This document shows, piece by piece, positions 2,938 through 32,251 of a stretch of 64,000 nt of DNA. Below the pieces are notes generated by a model that was given only the letters and a program-made list of their open reading frames with translations, did not search any database and had not been told where the DNA came from. The position numbers and the translations under genes were made by a program. The stretch lies in sequence record OP310983.1. The stretch is one strand, 5' to 3'. Each line of letters opens with the position of its first letter. Position 1 is the stretch's first letter.

Positions 2938-3363
2938 ATGAATAGTAAATGTAATGAATGCACTAAGCAAATCGATAATTCCCACGATATGCCAAAAACA
3001 CTTGGTATCTGCCATAAGCATTATCGGTTCAATGTATTTGGGGATAATGATTTACTTAAAGATTCTGATAAACTGGTTACATTTGAACTTAATAAAGAAA
3101 CTAATTTATTTGAATGTATTCTAGAAAATACTAAAGGTGAATATACTGGATTCCATCATCCTAAGTTTGGATTCCGTATTAAACATGATGATCCAATCAC
3201 TATTGTGGTGACTGCACCTGAACATGATATCTATATTGAATTAACTGTAACTGTTGAAGGTGTTACAAAAGCTGTCAATTGGTGCGGTCAGGAACTAGAC
3301 ACATTTAATTTACCTATGCAACATCCGTTTAATCTATGCTGGTCATATACGGCCAATAACTGA
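2938..3363 (+). CDS. Hypothetical protein
   Basis: 141-aa ORF with SD aagga; CxxC...CxxH at the N-terminus. Confidence 0.75.
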   Translation: MNSKCNECTKQIDNSHDMPKTLGICHKHYRFNVFGDNDLLKDSDKLVTFELNKETNLFECILENTKGEYTGFHHPKFGFRIKHDDPITIVVTAPEHDIYIELTVTVEGVTKAVNWCGQELDTFNLPMQHPFNLCWSYTANN

Positions 3364-28348: not shown

Positions 28349-30265
28349 ATGTCTAATGAACAACAGGTTACAAATAAGAAAAAGATTAAGGGCATTGAAG
28401 CCAAACATATTACTTATTGTACTGATCAATTTGGTAAGTTTACAGATGCGCATTTCGTTAAAGAACGAATTCATTTTGAAGATGGTACAACTGCAAATAA
28501 TTTAAGGATGTGGGAAAACTACCAGCGTCCTTTTTGGATTACCTCAAAAGGAATGCGTAACCATAAAGAAAAGAAAGATTACGAATATGAGCGTAACTTA
28601 GTTAAATACATGTCAACTCAAATTGACATGAAACGTAAGATTAGTAAAATCCTAGGTGACTATTCGGCTAGATCTCTTCGTCAACTAGCGCGTAGTCCTT
28701 ACCTATATGGCAGTGATGTTAGTTCAACCTGTTATCTGAAGCATGATTATCAAGAACGTTATCCTGGTCTAATCTCTCTAAACACTGTTGCTGGCGGTGA
28801 CATCGAAACCAACGTTTATGAAGCTGAGAACGATGGCCAGATTATCTGTATGTCAGTTACACATAAGAACAAAGCTTTCCTAGCCTATTTAAAACGATGG
28901 GTTAGTGATATTGAAGATCCAGTGAAAGAGACATTAGAACAAGCACAAAAAGAAGAGGTATTATCACATCTAATTAAAGAACGTGGTCTAGATATTGAAG
29001 TAATGGTTGTTGAAACACCAGTAGATATTATTATTGAATGTTTTAAACGACTACATACCTGGAAACCAGATTTCTTCGCATTCTGGAATATTAGCTTCGA
29101 CATTGGTAGAATCTTAAAAACATTAGAACACTATGGTGTTAATCCAGCTGATGTTTTTTCTGATCCATCGGTACCTAAGAATTATAGGTATTTCCATTTT
29201 AAGATTGATGAACCTATGACCACCACTGCATCTGGGGTCACTAAATCTAAAGGACCGGAGGATCAATGGCATTGGATTACAGCACCCTCTAGTTTTCAAT
29301 GTATCGATTCTATGTCAACTTATCGAGTAACTCGATTAGCTAAAGGACGTGATCCTAACTATCGGTTAGAGTCTATTCTTAGAAAAGAACTAAACATCGA
29401 TAAATCCACGACCATTAAAAATGATAAGGACTTAGAAGATTTTATTGAAGGTTTTAATAAACAACTAGTTGACCGACCAGGCGGCGTTATTACTAAATAT
29501 ATTAAAAATGTAGGTAGTAATGAATGGGTACCGGTGGATGATTTTATATTAAATGATAACTTTACCTATGGTGATTCTATTAGATATGTAATGGAATTTG
29601 GTAAGTTAACCTTTAAAGAAACTGCACATCTTGGTGGTATCGATTGGCACCGTGAGATGCAGACTAAGCATAAAATCAAATATGGTCTTTATAACATCAT
29701 CGACTCCATTCGACTAGAACAACTTGATGAACAAGTAAATGACCTTGGTCGCTCTATAAGTCTATTCTCTAAGGCATCTGACTATAAGAACTTTAGTTCT
29801 AACCCAAAACGACTATGTGACGATATGCACTTCTGGTATTTGAATAGACCAGAGCCATGTGTCATTGGTTCAAGTTCAGATCAGATGGTGCATGAACTTG
29901 ATCAATATGTTATTGGCCATAATGATTGGATTGTTACACTACCATCATACATGGCAGGTCCAAATGGATTGCAGTGTGTTAAAGATTTACCGAATTATAA
30001 AACCTTAATCTTCTGTCATATCGCCGACCTTGACATCGTGTCGACATATCCTAACGTTAGTCAGATTCTAAATATTGCACGTGAAACATGTGTGATGGAA
30101 TTCTCAATGATGGAAGGAATTAGTGAACACCATCGCCGTGAAGTTGGCGTAAACTTAACAGGTGGTAGGGTTAATGCTATTGAAATCACACAGAAGATCA
30201 TGGGTGCTCCTAAAATGGACACCCTGCTAGAGAAGTTTATTAATACCTATAAGAACCCAAAGTAA
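28349..30265 (+). CDS. Split family-B DNA polymerase subunit with 3'-5' exonuclease (gp82-like)
   Basis: ExoI DIET, ExoII FWNISFD, ExoIII YNIID, PolB motif A DIVSTYP; motifs B and C absent. Confidence 0.85.
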   Translation: MSNEQQVTNKKKIKGIEAKHITYCTDQFGKFTDAHFVKERIHFEDGTTANNLRMWENYQRPFWITSKGMRNHKEKKDYEYERNLVKYMSTQIDMKRKISKILGDYSARSLRQLARSPYLYGSDVSSTCYLKHDYQERYPGLISLNTVAGGDIETNVYEAENDGQIICMSVTHKNKAFLAYLKRWVSDIEDPVKETLEQAQKEEVLSHLIKERGLDIEVMVVETPVDIIIECFKRLHTWKPDFFAFWNISFDIGRILKTLEHYGVNPADVFSDPSVPKNYRYFHFKIDEPMTTTASGVTKSKGPEDQWHWITAPSSFQCIDSMSTYRVTRLAKGRDPNYRLESILRKELNIDKSTTIKNDKDLEDFIEGFNKQLVDRPGGVITKYIKNVGSNEWVPVDDFILNDNFTYGDSIRYVMEFGKLTFKETAHLGGIDWHREMQTKHKIKYGLYNIIDSIRLEQLDEQVNDLGRSISLFSKASDYKNFSSNPKRLCDDMHFWYLNRPEPCVIGSSSDQMVHELDQYVIGHNDWIVTLPSYMAGPNGLQCVKDLPNYKTLIFCHIADLDIVSTYPNVSQILNIARETCVMEFSMMEGISEHHRREVGVNLTGGRVNAIEITQKIMGAPKMDTLLEKFINTYKNPK

Positions 30266-30633
30266 TATATCAGTGGAAGCGCCGAGGAGGATATGAATGT
30301 TCATCTGTTGGTGACAAAAGATTCTCGGCTCTTTACGCAAGGCTTCCTGATGGCAGAACAATTGAGGAAGCTTGGCAGTTAGATTGTAAAGGATATCGCA
30401 TATACTCCAACCATTGGAAAGCTGGTAAAGGAAAACCACCACTAGACGGGTATAATCCCAAATATGATGATTATAAAAATCTGTGGAAAGTATGGGCGGT
30501 ATCTAATAAACATCTAATGGATGAATTGCGTCAGAATGCAAAAGAACATGATAACTATCTTTCTGATGTTTTTGCTTCTACTGATATTTCACAGGCACGT
30601 GCTCTAGCAGAACTACTTAATGAAGGATATTAA
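30265..30633 (+). CDS. Start-less conserved phage ORF, NADAR-like by eye (122 aa from ATA)
   Basis: Frame open 30253-30633: IYQWKRRGGYECSSVGDKRFSALYARLPDGRTIEEAWQLDCKG...QARALAELLNEGY; no upstream ATG/GTG/TTG in frame. Confidence 0.65.
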   Translation: MYQWKRRGGYECSSVGDKRFSALYARLPDGRTIEEAWQLDCKGYRIYSNHWKAGKGKPPLDGYNPKYDDYKNLWKVWAVSNKHLMDELRQNAKEHDNYLSDVFASTDISQARALAELLNEGY

Positions 30634-30701
30634 AAAATGGAAGGTATTCCTAATTAAATATTATCAATTGATCATTACTGCTAACATAAACTTCGACACA
30701 T

Positions 30702-30735
30702 CATAAAACCCTCCCATTACGGGAGGGTTTATTTC
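30702..30735. terminator. Bidirectional hairpin between convergent genes
   Basis: cata-aaaccctccc-attac-gggagggttt-attt. Confidence 0.65.
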
Positions 30736-30736
30736 G

Positions 30737-32251
30737 TTAACTAATTTGGTATTTTAAATTCTGATTACCGTTTAGAACATAAATCTTACCGTCATTATTA
30801 AACGTATTGGCAAAACCTGCATCCACTAAACCAGTTTCTAAATTACCTAAATTTATCCATCGTGCTAATCGTGGTTCATAATACTTAATTGGTGCGTTAT
30901 TTTGATTTTCACCAGCGATTACATAAAGTTCACCAGATGGGCGTATATTAATAGCTGCACCAAGAGGTATACCTGTAGTTATTGGTTTGGACCAATTATT
31001 GTTGGTTTGATTGTACGATATGATTCCAGTATTAACACCAGCACCAACCGTACCACCAATAACGCATACGCTATTATTATAAATACTCACTGAATAATCT
31101 TGGGTATATTCCCCAGTATCATTAAATGCTGCACCACTGGTATATGTATCTGTAGTTGGATTGTACATTAATGTAAATCCACGATTATTTGTCGCAGTTG
31201 TATCAGCTGCACCTAATATGTAGATTAACCCATTAAGACTAGTTCCACGTGCATACCGGCAAGCTATCGTGCCTGGTGATTTTATTTCCCATGTATTAGT
31301 TGCAGGATCATAACACTGCATATCTTTAGTAAGTACACCATCTGTGGCACTTTCACCACCATAGAAATATACTTTACCATTAAATGCAACAGCCGAGCAT
31401 TGTTTAACTGCTATAGGCGTACCAGTTGGTTGTAATGTTGTTAACTTACCCGTGACTAAATTCAGTGTACGTAGAGCAGTATTAGCATTATTCTTACCAC
31501 CGTAATAATAGACTAAGTTACCTATTTGGGCACCTGCTGCCATTTCGTTATCAGTTTCAAAATCAGTAAGTTTAATAACATTATCTTTAACGAATGGATA
31601 TGTACCACTAGCATAAACCACTGGACGCCAACCTTGGGTTGCAGCACCCGTTTCACTACTTGACGAGCTAGTTATATCAATCGCATAGTAGCCACGATAG
31701 AGCTGGTCATTAACTGGATCACTACCTGGGTCTCTTCCCCAGTTAGTAGTACCATCAGTGCTAATACCACCAGCGACCGCTTGGTTAATACCTAAGTCAT
31801 TATCTGTAAATTTATAAGGCCAGTTAGCACCATTTAAATTAGATACGTGAACATTATAAAGTAACCTTTGCCATTCTGATGTGGCACCAGCCATTGTTAA
31901 TAAACCAAATTTATAAATGTTCCCCATAAATCTAACTTCATAGTCACCATTACGGAGTCCGGCATTATTAAGCCGTGATTTTTGTATTGATTTACGAGCT
32001 GGTTTCTTTGGTATGTAACAAGTAACATTTTTATTAGAGAACTTTAACCATGGTTGTCCATCATTGATTACTGTTCCAAATGTCATATTAACTAATTTAG
32101 CTGCATCATCATAACCAAATAATTCTGAAGATGTTGTTTCACCATACAAACCTAATTCCCTTGTCCCAGCTATCAGTGTTTTAGGACCTGGATAAGGATC
32201 GGAATATATAGGCGTATTTGTTAGTCCAGAAGACAACAATAACTCAAACAT
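30737..32251 (-). CDS. Virion protein of the gp83/gp130-135-like family with C-terminal Kelch repeats
   Basis: N-terminal PYPGPKTLIAG..LGLYGE family motif (recalled); about six Kelch repeats (VYYYGG, VYFYGG..YDPATNTW, IYILGA..YNPTTDTY). Confidence 0.75.
   Translation of the reverse strand: MFELLLSSGLTNTPIYSDPYPGPKTLIAGTRELGLYGETTSSELFGYDDAAKLVNMTFGTVINDGQPWLKFSNKNVTCYIPKKPARKSIQKSRLNNAGLRNGDYEVRFMGNIYKFGLLTMAGATSEWQRLLYNVHVSNLNGANWPYKFTDNDLGINQAVAGGISTDGTTNWGRDPGSDPVNDQLYRGYYAIDITSSSSSETGAATQGWRPVVYASGTYPFVKDNVIKLTDFETDNEMAAGAQIGNLVYYYGGKNNANTALRTLNLVTGKLTTLQPTGTPIAVKQCSAVAFNGKVYFYGGESATDGVLTKDMQCYDPATNTWEIKSPGTIACRYARGTSLNGLIYILGAADTTATNNRGFTLMYNPTTDTYTSGAAFNDTGEYTQDYSVSIYNNSVCVIGGTVGAGVNTGIISYNQTNNNWSKPITTGIPLGAAINIRPSGELYVIAGENQNNAPIKYYEPRLARWINLGNLETGLVDAGFANTFNNDGKIYVLNGNQNLKYQIS

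Follow-up and report, generated by a model that had tools for sequence, protein, structure and literature searches.

In phiKZ-like giant phages, the gene gp82, which encodes the N-terminal half of the DNA polymerase (DNAP-N), very probably ends in a programmed −1 frameshift site, at which a fraction of ribosomes would fuse a 123-residue extension to the polymerase subunit. This reading is drawn from sequence comparison. The DNA analysed (the window) is a stretch of 64,000 nucleotides from record OP310983.1 and is part of a Phikzvirus genome. The gp82 product is annotated as DNA polymerase or PHIKZ082 and matches the phrog_3011 'DNA polymerase' profile (E 1.2e-241). Structure and biochemistry of the gp82+gp50 polymerase are available in a preprint (10.64898/2026.09.30.755723). 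DNAP-N and the extension were used as two separate search queries. The features of the locus, in window positions, are as follows.

28349..30265, plus strand: DNAP-N gene gp82, 638 codons and then TAA, a listed open reading frame
30256..30262, plus strand: slippery heptamer C_CCA_AAG, in X_XXY_YYZ register with the 28349..30265 frame (codons AAC CCA AAG)
30263..30265, plus strand: 0-frame stop TAA directly 3' of the heptamer, terminating the 638-aa product
30262..30633, plus strand: predicted −1 extension, 123 codons (GTA ATA TAT CAG TGG ... GGA TAT), then TAA
30280..30313, plus strand: weak local hairpin about 18 nt 3' of the heptamer (MFE −10.5 kcal/mol, z = −0.75)
30293..30382, plus strand: 30-codon ORF annotated in some genomes (locus 2994-3083), in the polymerase frame past its stop
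30364-30366, 30388-30390 and 30565-30567, plus strand: codons of the invariant E35, K43 and D102, candidate catalytic residues
30517..30633, plus strand: annotated mini-ORF PHIKZ082.1, 38 aa, beginning at the first ATG of the extension
30706..30730, plus strand: intrinsic-terminator-like hairpin with a T run, ahead of gp83
30737-32251, minus strand: gp83, a convergent gene

The 3' end of gp82 reads ...AAG AAC CCA AAG TAA TAT ATC AGT GG. The heptamer C_CCA_AAG is highly shift-prone in E. coli (PMC5009743). CCCAAAG occurs once in the 64-kb window, both strands counted, against 4.8 occurrences expected. The −1 frame has an upstream stop at 30250, is open from 30253 to 30630 (126 sense codons) and closes with TAA at 30631-30633. 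Read from the slip, the extension protein runs V-I-Y-Q-W-K...E-G-Y (30262-30630), and the predicted trans-frame product measures 638+123 = 761 aa. The only in-frame ATG, GTG or TTG codons of the −1 frame are ATG 30517 and TTG 30526. An earlier sequence-only reading of this DNA had described a heptamer right before the polymerase stop and a start-less −1 frame absent from the list of open reading frames. These points hold: the heptamer is in register with TAA adjoining, the first canonical start comes only at 30517, and the frame is not among the listed ORFs. The protein translation quoted in that reading agrees with retranslation. Its open frame is real, but the lengths it gave need correction, as the post-slip extension has 123 residues, neither 122 nor 127.

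Conservation of the site was examined at 17 independent polymerase/domain junctions, from phiKZ-like phages, PhiPA3, HHBS36_1, Phabio, 201phi2-1, Viktualia and 11 metagenomic contigs. C_CCA_AAG is present in register at all 17. The 45 nt upstream of it are just 30-70% conserved, and third positions flanking it are 36-79% conserved. The codon preceding CCA is AAC, CCC, ACC, GAC, GCC, TCC, CTC or GTC and ends in C in every case. Conservation of the heptamer therefore exceeds what the encoded amino acids require. Its rarity in the window, taken together with its invariance at the homologous junctions, argues for more than chance. The 0-frame stop follows the heptamer immediately at 15 of the 17 junctions; 201phi2-1 and SRR28089900 have one extra codon in between. 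Among 120 DNAP-N homologue clusters, 27 end in ...PK and five further ones in PK plus one or two residues.

More distant relatives show other solutions. Noxifer does not have CCCAAAG; an in-register A_AAA_AAG lies 14 codons ahead of its polymerase stop, and the −1 frame runs open into the domain and contains no start codon. In one contig that carries a PhiKZ_MCP gene (P0223/L032), a DNAP-N with 30% identity has the domain fused in frame. No in-frame fusion to the domain was found among the 120 closest DNAP-N clusters. A second candidate fusion protein, P0262, was discarded because it is not a DNAP-N homologue. In D6 and Psa21 the heptamer is absent, and the domain is encoded in the +1 frame as a separate overlapping gene with its own GTG or TTG start. 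These separate genes, together with the ATG or GTG found in seven lineages (see below), indicate that tethering to the polymerase is not obligatory. The frameshift put forward in the sequence-only reading is strongly supported by the conserved heptamer and stop, the frequent lack of a start codon, the Noxifer site and the P0223 fusion.

The following course of translation is proposed. The majority of ribosomes would stop at UAA and yield the 638-aa DNAP-N. A fraction would slip by −1, with tRNA-Pro moving from CCA to CCC together with tRNA-Lys from AAG to AAA. Alternatively, the P-site tRNA-Lys could slip on A_AAG with the stop codon positioned in the A site. Shifted ribosomes would read GUA AUA UAU... 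and produce a DNAP-N-extension fusion of 761 aa (~88 kDa), so that each such event would give one polymerase subunit with a single domain copy at its C-terminus. The gp82 C-terminus, which would be the fusion point, is placed in the 'palm insertion' domain of the gp82/gp50 polymerase. The TAA abutting the heptamer may stimulate slippage as a 'shifty stop'. The hairpin at 30280..30313 is doubtful as a stimulator, and folding of the window sequence is no better than that of shuffled sequence (z = −0.75), in line with the earlier remark that no strong downstream structure is apparent. PhiPA3-type relatives have a stronger form of this hairpin (GUCGCGGAGGA...UCCUCCGUUGGCGAC), and in one subgroup synonymous-codon conservation is elevated over the first ~20 extension codons. 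A stimulator structure common to all lineages was rejected: RNAalifold on 14 junctions gave −2.4 kcal/mol, no covariation and no common structure. No upstream Shine-Dalgarno-like stimulator is consistent among the junctions.

The extension is a member of a large protein family. It matches phrog_9995, an uncharacterised phage protein family, with residues 3-123 aligned to profile positions 2-123 of 124 (E 1.7e-55). The extension domain has 693 homologues, and its family comprises at least 854 representative clusters. Free-standing homologues occur in many phages, including a free ~125-aa early protein of N4-like phages, and the domain recurs in proteins of 2-6 kaa. Its fusion partners include DUF4326, SLOG, DUF488-N3a, guanylate kinase, RNase H and SF1 helicase; such a set has been described for NADAR and Macro domains (PMC9503650, PMC7824862). 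Twenty-three residues are invariant in the family, among them E35, Q39, D41, K43 and D102, and the window copy retains all 23. NADAR catalysis employs a conserved Glu and Lys (E88 and K95 in the E. coli C7 NADAR) and a later acidic residue (PMC11543638). The motif of the domain is E-x3-Q-x3-K (E-x7-K), compared with E-x3-Q-x2-K (E-x6-K) in YbiA.

The sequence-only reading had called the extension NADAR-like, and this assignment is only partly supported. The AlphaFold2 model of the domain (pLDDT 96.3) shows four or five helices and a pair of small beta elements. In the PDB, TM exceeds 0.4 for YbiA 2b3w (0.53) and NADAR 8bau (0.43) alone; viral NADARs reach TM 0.45-0.59 against the model, and of the weak BFVD matches, 11 carry the name NADAR or YbiA. 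The Foldseek comparison that the earlier reading had suggested thus places NADAR proteins as the best matches, but with non-significant E-values of 0.5-10. In a low-confidence hhalign alignment the motifs FS-x, DG-x-T, E-x3-Q, W..N..L and D..F/W are collinear with YbiA, as are E35, K43 and D102. Fold matches, the E/Q/K invariants and the fusion partners thus speak for the label; profile searches speak against it. The Pfam NADAR model PF08719 at E <= 1 matched neither the window protein nor 71 homologues, while YbiA as a control scores 133 bits. An NCBIfam scan of the extension and the 71 homologues returned chance-level matches only. In hhalign, comparison with a YbiA-family profile reached a non-significant E = 0.35, and against YbiA as a single sequence GKGK alone was aligned. 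When all PDB sequences were searched with the family profile, ribosomal protein L3 alone came up (E = 0.02) and was judged spurious.

We tentatively propose that the domain is a small, divergent NADAR/YbiA-like N-glycosidase with a candidate active site of E35, K43 and D102, which would remove ADP-ribose or N-glycosidic adducts at the replisome. Its putative substrates are ADP-ribose or a related N-glycosidic adduct on nucleic acid or nucleotides. One example would be the guanine ADP-ribosylation carried out by DarT1-type defence systems, in which case the domain would complement the phiKZ macrodomain AdfM (gp104), a counter-factor to DarT2. Hydrolase activity on ADP-ribosylated DNA and clearance of the fork by the domain are hypotheses. 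It is somewhat unlikely that the broadest version holds, in which chimalliviruses employ recoding to equip a fixed fraction of their replicative polymerases with a NADAR-like glycohydrolase that strips ADP-ribose, such as DarT1-type guanine adducts, from the template at the fork within the phage nucleus.

It is quite possible that the frameshift is real and that the extension is some module other than a de-ADP-ribosylase, such as an N-glycosidase acting on free nucleotides or ADPr-derived signals, a replisome accessory that binds nucleic acid or nucleotides, or an adaptor between proteins. In its favour, sequence and profile matches to NADAR fall short of significance, as do the structural matches. 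According to Iyer et al., most phage NADAR and Macro domains target soluble ADPr derivatives and not DNA adducts (PMC9503650). The SLOG and guanylate kinase partners are nucleotide-centred, and the early N4-like protein shows that the family exists free of a polymerase. The invariant polar residues E35, Q39, D41, K43 and D102, however, hint at catalysis over plain binding, and no structural match other than NADAR proteins recurs. A substrate linked to nucleic acid is suggested, moreover, by the fact that the domain has been fused independently with DNAP-N, with RNase H and with an SF1 helicase.

The other alternatives do without a ribosomal frameshift. At the 17 junctions, the codon at the supposed start of the extension is no start codon in 10 lineages (ATA, ATT, ACA, GAA or GTA), while the other seven have ATG or GTG. 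The earlier reading had proposed alignment of the junction across relatives, with an ATG and no heptamer as the pattern that would speak against a frameshift. CCCAAAG is kept throughout the alignment, the start codon is frequently missing, and the relatives with ATG or GTG retain the heptamer. That the extension is translated on its own into a 122-aa protein, through termination-reinitiation or a leaky AUA start (30265-30267), is improbable. The UAAUA that overlaps the polymerase stop is viewed in this alternative as a decayed UAAUG. TAATG does stand at the exact position in PhiPA3 and one metagenomic relative, and GTG in 201phi2-1-type and some further relatives; the free-standing homologues and the phrog_9995 profile, which begins at this position, fit a separate protein as well. 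Against it, ACA, GAA, GTA or ATT occupies the position in eight other lineages and offers no usable initiator, and no Shine-Dalgarno sequence precedes 30265 in the window. A separate protein also leaves unexplained why CCCAAAG never varies at these junctions, even in the C that forms the third base of an otherwise variable codon, and it accounts neither for the Noxifer A_AAA_AAG nor for the in-frame P0223 fusion.

A decaying pseudogene in phiKZ, that is, a once-independent gene which lost its ATG and fell silent, is highly improbable. The start codon is indeed absent, and across the 47 phage genomes that share this junction the full frame is unannotated save for the 38-aa fragment. The 123 codons are, however, intact in ten start-less lineages with saturated synonymous sites and dN/dS of 0.09-0.34, which by this sequence measure places the start-less copies under purifying selection; the heptamer is conserved and the 23 family-invariant residues are all kept. 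Both the ATA start and the pseudogene, which had been offered earlier as the alternative, are disfavoured by these values and by the codons seen elsewhere. A change of frame in the nucleic acid itself, whether by an error of sequencing or assembly or by slippage of RNA polymerase, is just as remote. Nothing specific favours it beyond the short C3 and A3 runs at the site. Forty-seven phage genomes sequenced independently share the identical junction, which excludes a sequencing error, and the same arrangement recurs at 16 other junctions. Runs of three are too short for transcriptional slippage, which in known cases requires far longer homopolymer runs, a matter discussed in PMC5009743.

The proposed −1 frameshift has several known counterparts. 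The E. coli copA gene is said to shift frame on C_CCA_AAG, as Meydan and co-workers reported in 2017, and its shifted product is reportedly truncated and chaperone-like. The copA heptamer is the same as that of gp82 and is likewise read by bacterial ribosomes, whereas the gp82 product would be an extended fusion. A CCCAAAG oligonucleotide also features in a study of ATP7B. The lambda G/GT tail-assembly chaperone site (G_GGA_AAG) and its equivalents in tailed phages share with the proposed gp82 site a −1 shift on X_XXA_AAG near the end of the upstream ORF, a downstream ORF with no initiation signal that is produced only as a C-terminal extension, and conservation over very divergent phages despite being missed by gene callers. 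The upstream protein is a structural chaperone in lambda and a catalytic DNA polymerase subunit here. Unlike in lambda, the gp82 extension is enzyme-like and occurs free in other phages, and the 0-frame stop abuts the heptamer. The dnaX tau/gamma frameshift (A_AAA_AAG) also takes place in a replicase gene and gives two versions of a subunit at a set ratio. It involves slippage of tRNA-Lys on AAG, as proposed here, and its heptamer is identical to that of the Noxifer DNAP-N. The dnaX shift truncates the protein, while the gp82 shift would extend it by a domain. Stimulation in dnaX comes from an upstream SD-like element and a strong downstream stem-loop (PMC5009743), in contrast to the gp82 site, which has no conserved RNA stimulator in the RNAalifold analysis of 14 junctions.

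The domain can likewise be set beside known NADARs, namely YbiA, the DarT1-associated antitoxins and T4 gp30.3. The identity of T4 gp30.3 with AdfN, given in the sequence-only reading, is correct, and AdfN is a phage NADAR that strips DarT1 ADP-ribose from phage DNA (PMC11257639). Resemblance consists in TM values of 0.43-0.59, an invariant Glu-Lys pair in a single helix with an Asp further on, and shared DUF4326 and SLOG fusion partners. The gp82 extension differs in its length (~123 aa versus 150-190), its lack of a PF08719 match and a Glu-Lys spacing one residue longer than in YbiA, and, unlike the free AdfN, it would be joined to a polymerase. AdfM (gp104) is a nucleus-localised phiKZ macrodomain and anti-DarT2 factor, and chimalliviruses need ADP-ribose-removing enzymes inside the phage nucleus despite its protein shell (PMC13309987). 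AdfM is found in the same phage as the extension, but it has a macrodomain fold, is encoded by a separate gene, acts on thymidine adducts and has no known link to the polymerase.

Among nucleus-forming jumbo phages phiKZ serves as the model, and its gp82/gp50/gp155 polymerase structure has been newly solved. The structural study does not mention an extended gp82 (preprint 10.64898/2026.09.30.755723), and searches for phiKZ polymerase frameshifting and PHIKZ082.1 found no paper or annotation that describes the frameshift. If an extended gp82 is made, the current composition of the replisome is incomplete. We hypothesize that the phage protects its DNA from base ADP-ribosylation during replication by an activity physically coupled to the polymerase. 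If true, the polymerase would be the first known replicase with a built-in anti-defence or adduct-reversal enzyme. The family would then form a minimal clade new to the NADAR superfamily, a module found again in hundreds of proteins, both phage proteins and giant multidomain ones. The domain family has no Pfam model, and assignment of its activity would inform many phage genomes.

The locus also presents an annotation problem, as in dozens of genomes gene callers omit the ORF or leave only 38-100 aa of it. PHIKZ082.1 is the C-terminal third of the extension miscalled as a gene, and a match to phrog_33573 is limited to extension residues 86-123. The ORF at 30293..30382 is probably spurious, since its GAGGAGG/ATG comes from the extension codons R-G-G-Y-E. 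An Rfam scan of 30100-30800 gave just sub-threshold matches, which fall on the terminator. This hairpin (30706..30730) closes the transcription unit of gp82 and its extension before the convergent gp83.

The gene for gp82, the N-terminal half of the phiKZ DNA polymerase (DNAP-N), ends in AAC CCA AAG TAA. A sequence-only reading had pointed to an in-register slippery heptamer and a start-less open -1 frame running past this stop; both are present in the sequence as claimed, and the translation that it quoted is correct. The features of the region are as follows.

28349..30265, gp82 (DNAP-N) ORF, 638 aa, annotated DNA polymerase; phrog_3011, E 1.2e-241
30256-30262, slippery heptamer C_CCA_AAG, in X_XXY_YYZ register with the gp82 frame
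30250 to 30633, -1 frame: stop at 30250, open to 30630, TAA at 30631-30633
30517-30633, PHIKZ082.1, 38 aa, GenBank fragment of the extension
30293-30382, 30-aa ORF in a frame other than that of the extension, called by some annotators

The only canonical start codons of the -1 frame are ATG at 30517 and TTG at 30526. CCCAAAG occurs once in the window, at the end of gp82, against 4.8 occurrences expected. The interior of gp82 has two more in-register X_XXY_YYZ heptamers, T_TTA_AAA and C_CCA_AAA (28888-28894 and 29803-29809). A sequencing artefact at the junction can be rejected because the region from 29800 to 30750, which is 100% identical in many Phikzvirus genomes, is found at an identity of at least 90% in 47 phage records.

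The -1 frame codes for a real protein. It is matched over its whole length by phrog_9995 (E 1.7e-55), and tblastn finds homologues in 91 phage records, including Pseudomonas jumbo phages, N4-like Achromobacter and Delftia phages, and Sphingomonas phage PAU. A large protein database holds 693 homologues, mostly free-standing and about 125 aa long; an exhaustive profile search yielded 854 representative clusters of the domain, and 23 columns are invariant in an alignment of 71 sequences. GenBank covers the extension with at most two fragments, the 38-aa piece and the 30-aa ORF. The latter is called by some annotators because a strong Shine-Dalgarno-like GAGGAGG is followed there by two out-of-frame ATGs (30284-30299). 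The motif is explained by the extension codons for R-G-G-Y-E, and it is missing in relatives whose protein has R-Y-D-G/A-Y-E instead. In N4-like phages such as Achromobacter phage Axy24 (L013:1480-1869), free-standing homologues lie in the first ~2 kb amid small early genes, a position that would suit a part in host takeover or anti-defence early in infection.

Comparison of junctions makes it very likely that extended DNAP-N is produced by a programmed -1 frameshift. Some ribosomes would shift on C_CCA_AAG before UAA, adding a C-terminal extension of 123 residues and giving a product of 761 aa and roughly 88 kDa (computed). The junction set comprised every independent case of the domain following DNAP-N obtainable from GenBank phages, IMG/VR and metagenome contigs. 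All 17 junctions, the metagenomic ones among them not all phylogenetically independent, have an unchanged CCCAAAG in register, and the 45 nt 5' of this heptamer are only 30-70% conserved. The codon ahead of CCA codes for N, P, T, D, A, S, L or V, and its third base is always C, the base that the slippery pattern calls for. The 0-frame stop (TAA, TAG or TGA) directly follows the heptamer in 15 of the 17 and comes one codon later in the remaining pair. At none of the 17 does a stop interrupt the -1 frame between the heptamer and the domain, and this includes the 201phi2-1 group, whose linker has 12 nt more. The junction of 201phi2-1, Viktualia and SRR28089900 resembles a ~15-nt duplication, CCCAAAG-(T/C)TGTAAG-CCCAAGTATTGTG (L005:580-610, L006:580-610, L031:1954-1985), which would have left a degenerate second heptamer copy and lengthened the linker by four codons with the frame kept.

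Codon at the 'start' position of the domain frame
ATA: window, ERZ27268034, ERR2298563
ATT: SRR18067259
ACA: three contigs
GAA: two lineages
GTA: Phabio, SRR18476386
ATG: PhiPA3 and one contig
GTG: 201phi2-1 group, ERZ1755726 (HHBS36_1 has GTG one codon earlier)

A usable initiator is thus missing from ten lineages, and these show the conserved heptamer without ATG that the sequence-only reading took as the mark of a frameshift. The contrary pattern, ATG at the equivalent position and no heptamer, is not seen in the 17 junctions: those with ATG or GTG keep CCCAAAG. In the start-less lineages the domain frame is unbroken and evolves under purifying selection (pairwise dN/dS 0.09-0.34, with synonymous sites often saturated).

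Three further observations support the frameshift. Phage Noxifer has no CCCAAAG and carries instead A_AAA_AAG, a dnaX-type heptamer, in register 14 codons 5' of the DNAP-N stop (L012:553-559); from there the -1 frame continues uninterrupted into the domain, with no start codon, and GenBank calls only a truncated 99-aa ORF. DNAP-N C-termini end in ...PK in 27/120 homologue clusters and in PK plus 1-2 residues in five more. In P0223, a DNAP-N homologue with 30% identity to gp82 from a distant relative (locus L032, adjoining a PhiKZ-type major capsid gene), the domain is fused in frame at the C-terminus, which shows that the fusion is a functional architecture. In D6 and Psa21 the heptamer is absent, and the domain lies in the +1 frame, overlapping the last ~9 DNAP-N codons (L010, L011, about 590-640), with GTG in D6 and TTG in Psa21 directly before YQWK. 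In these two phages the domain seems to have a gene of its own, so it can also work untethered, as in many unrelated phages.

The mechanism itself is of a well-known kind: like lambda G/GT and dnaX, the putative chimallivirus site belongs with bacterial -1 frameshifts on X_XXA_AAG, and C_CCA_AAG has been described as highly shift-prone in E. coli (PMC5009743). We found no annotation or paper describing such recoding in a chimallivirus DNA polymerase. The window's local hairpin at 30280-30313 folds no more stably than shuffled sequence does (z = -0.75), and RNAalifold found no structure common to all lineages (-2.4 kcal/mol, no covariation); PhiPA3-type relatives have a better hairpin beginning about 17 nt past the site. 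Synonymous codon identity across nine junctions, including the window and HHBS36_1, is 0.80-0.85 over the first ~20 codons versus 0.3-0.55 later, a suggestive but not general sign of a stimulator. The one candidate stimulator that recurs across the lineages is the adjacent stop codon, which may contribute as a 'shifty stop' (Weiss et al., 1987, as cited in PMC5009743).

The proposed NADAR identity is supported only in part. Built on the alignment, an AlphaFold2 model of the domain reaches very high confidence (pLDDT 96.3, pTM 0.88), and its only PDB matches with meaningful TM-scores are E. coli YbiA (2b3w, 0.53) and a Phytophthora NADAR with ADP-ribose (8bau, 0.43); no Foldseek E-value against PDB is significant. 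Among viral models, four members of its own family rank above weak matches named NADAR or YbiA (n = 11, TM 0.43-0.59); DUF4326 is also among the weak matches (n = 7). Sequence methods assigned the domain to no family: Pfam NADAR matches no family member, NCBIfam does not match the family, a PDB sequence search found nothing relevant, and hhalign against the YbiA-family profile gave E = 0.35. No Pfam model exists for the family. In the low-confidence hhalign alignment with YbiA the motifs are collinear (FSAL with FSNF, DGRTI-EE-WQ with DGKTWPTSEHYFQ, W..N..L with KF.QH..L, LSDVF with NDAYW), the Glu-Lys spacing being one residue longer than in YbiA. NADAR catalysis needs a superfamily-conserved Glu and Lys and, further along the chain, an acidic residue; in E. 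coli C7 NADAR these are E88, K95 and D171 (PMC11543638), and E35, K43 and D102 are invariant in the domain family. On the predicted structure, its weak structural matches and the context, we take the domain as a candidate member of the superfamily, probably a minimal and divergent NADAR-like enzyme working in the NAD/ADP-ribose network of phages.

gp82 pairs 1:1 with gp50 (DNAP-C), the RNase H-clamp protein gp155 associates, and a 'palm insertion' domain includes gp82 residues 589-638 (10.64898/2026.09.30.755723). A tentative proposal by analogy is that the extension acts at the replisome as an N-glycosidase, stripping nucleic acid of adducts of the ADP-ribose type. Its precedents are T4 AdfN (gp30.3), a phage NADAR clearing DarT1 ADP-ribose from phage DNA (PMC11257639), and phiKZ AdfM (gp104), a nuclear macrodomain required against DarT2 even with most of the toxin kept out of the phage nucleus (PMC13309987). 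Tethering to the polymerase would bring automatic import into the nucleus and placement on template DNA. The domain's substrates may instead be soluble ADPr derivatives or nucleotides.

In a survey of architectures the domain recurs in independent fusions, its partners being DUF4326 (five cases), SLOG domains (YAcAr, cpYpsA), DUF488-N3a (two cases), guanylate kinase, RNase H (two cases) and a PIF1-like SF1 helicase. The ~120-aa domain is also embedded in predicted proteins of 2,000-6,100 aa (P0138, P0154, P0157, P0160, P0162, P0163, P0232 and others). Five large domain-bearing proteins tested (1.5-2.3 kaa) had no Pfam domain at E < 1e-4; such proteins may be polyvalent phage or conjugative-element proteins, or mis-called genes.

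In PhiPA3 a group I intron (L017:1914-2219, same region in L004; Rfam RF00028, 71.7 bits, E 2.5e-18) interrupts the DNAP-N gene precisely within polymerase motif A (...HVADLD / IVSTYPNV...). Of the two exons GenBank has just the first (gp085, 608 aa), leaving the second (L017:2268-2504) unannotated; gp82 of the window has no intron there. Many metagenomic DNAP-N clusters (P0459-P0508) end at ...HVADLD/HVAD in motif A and others at ...VVGHDxWI, a pattern suggesting that introns or insertions recur at two places in the polymerase genes of chimalliviruses.
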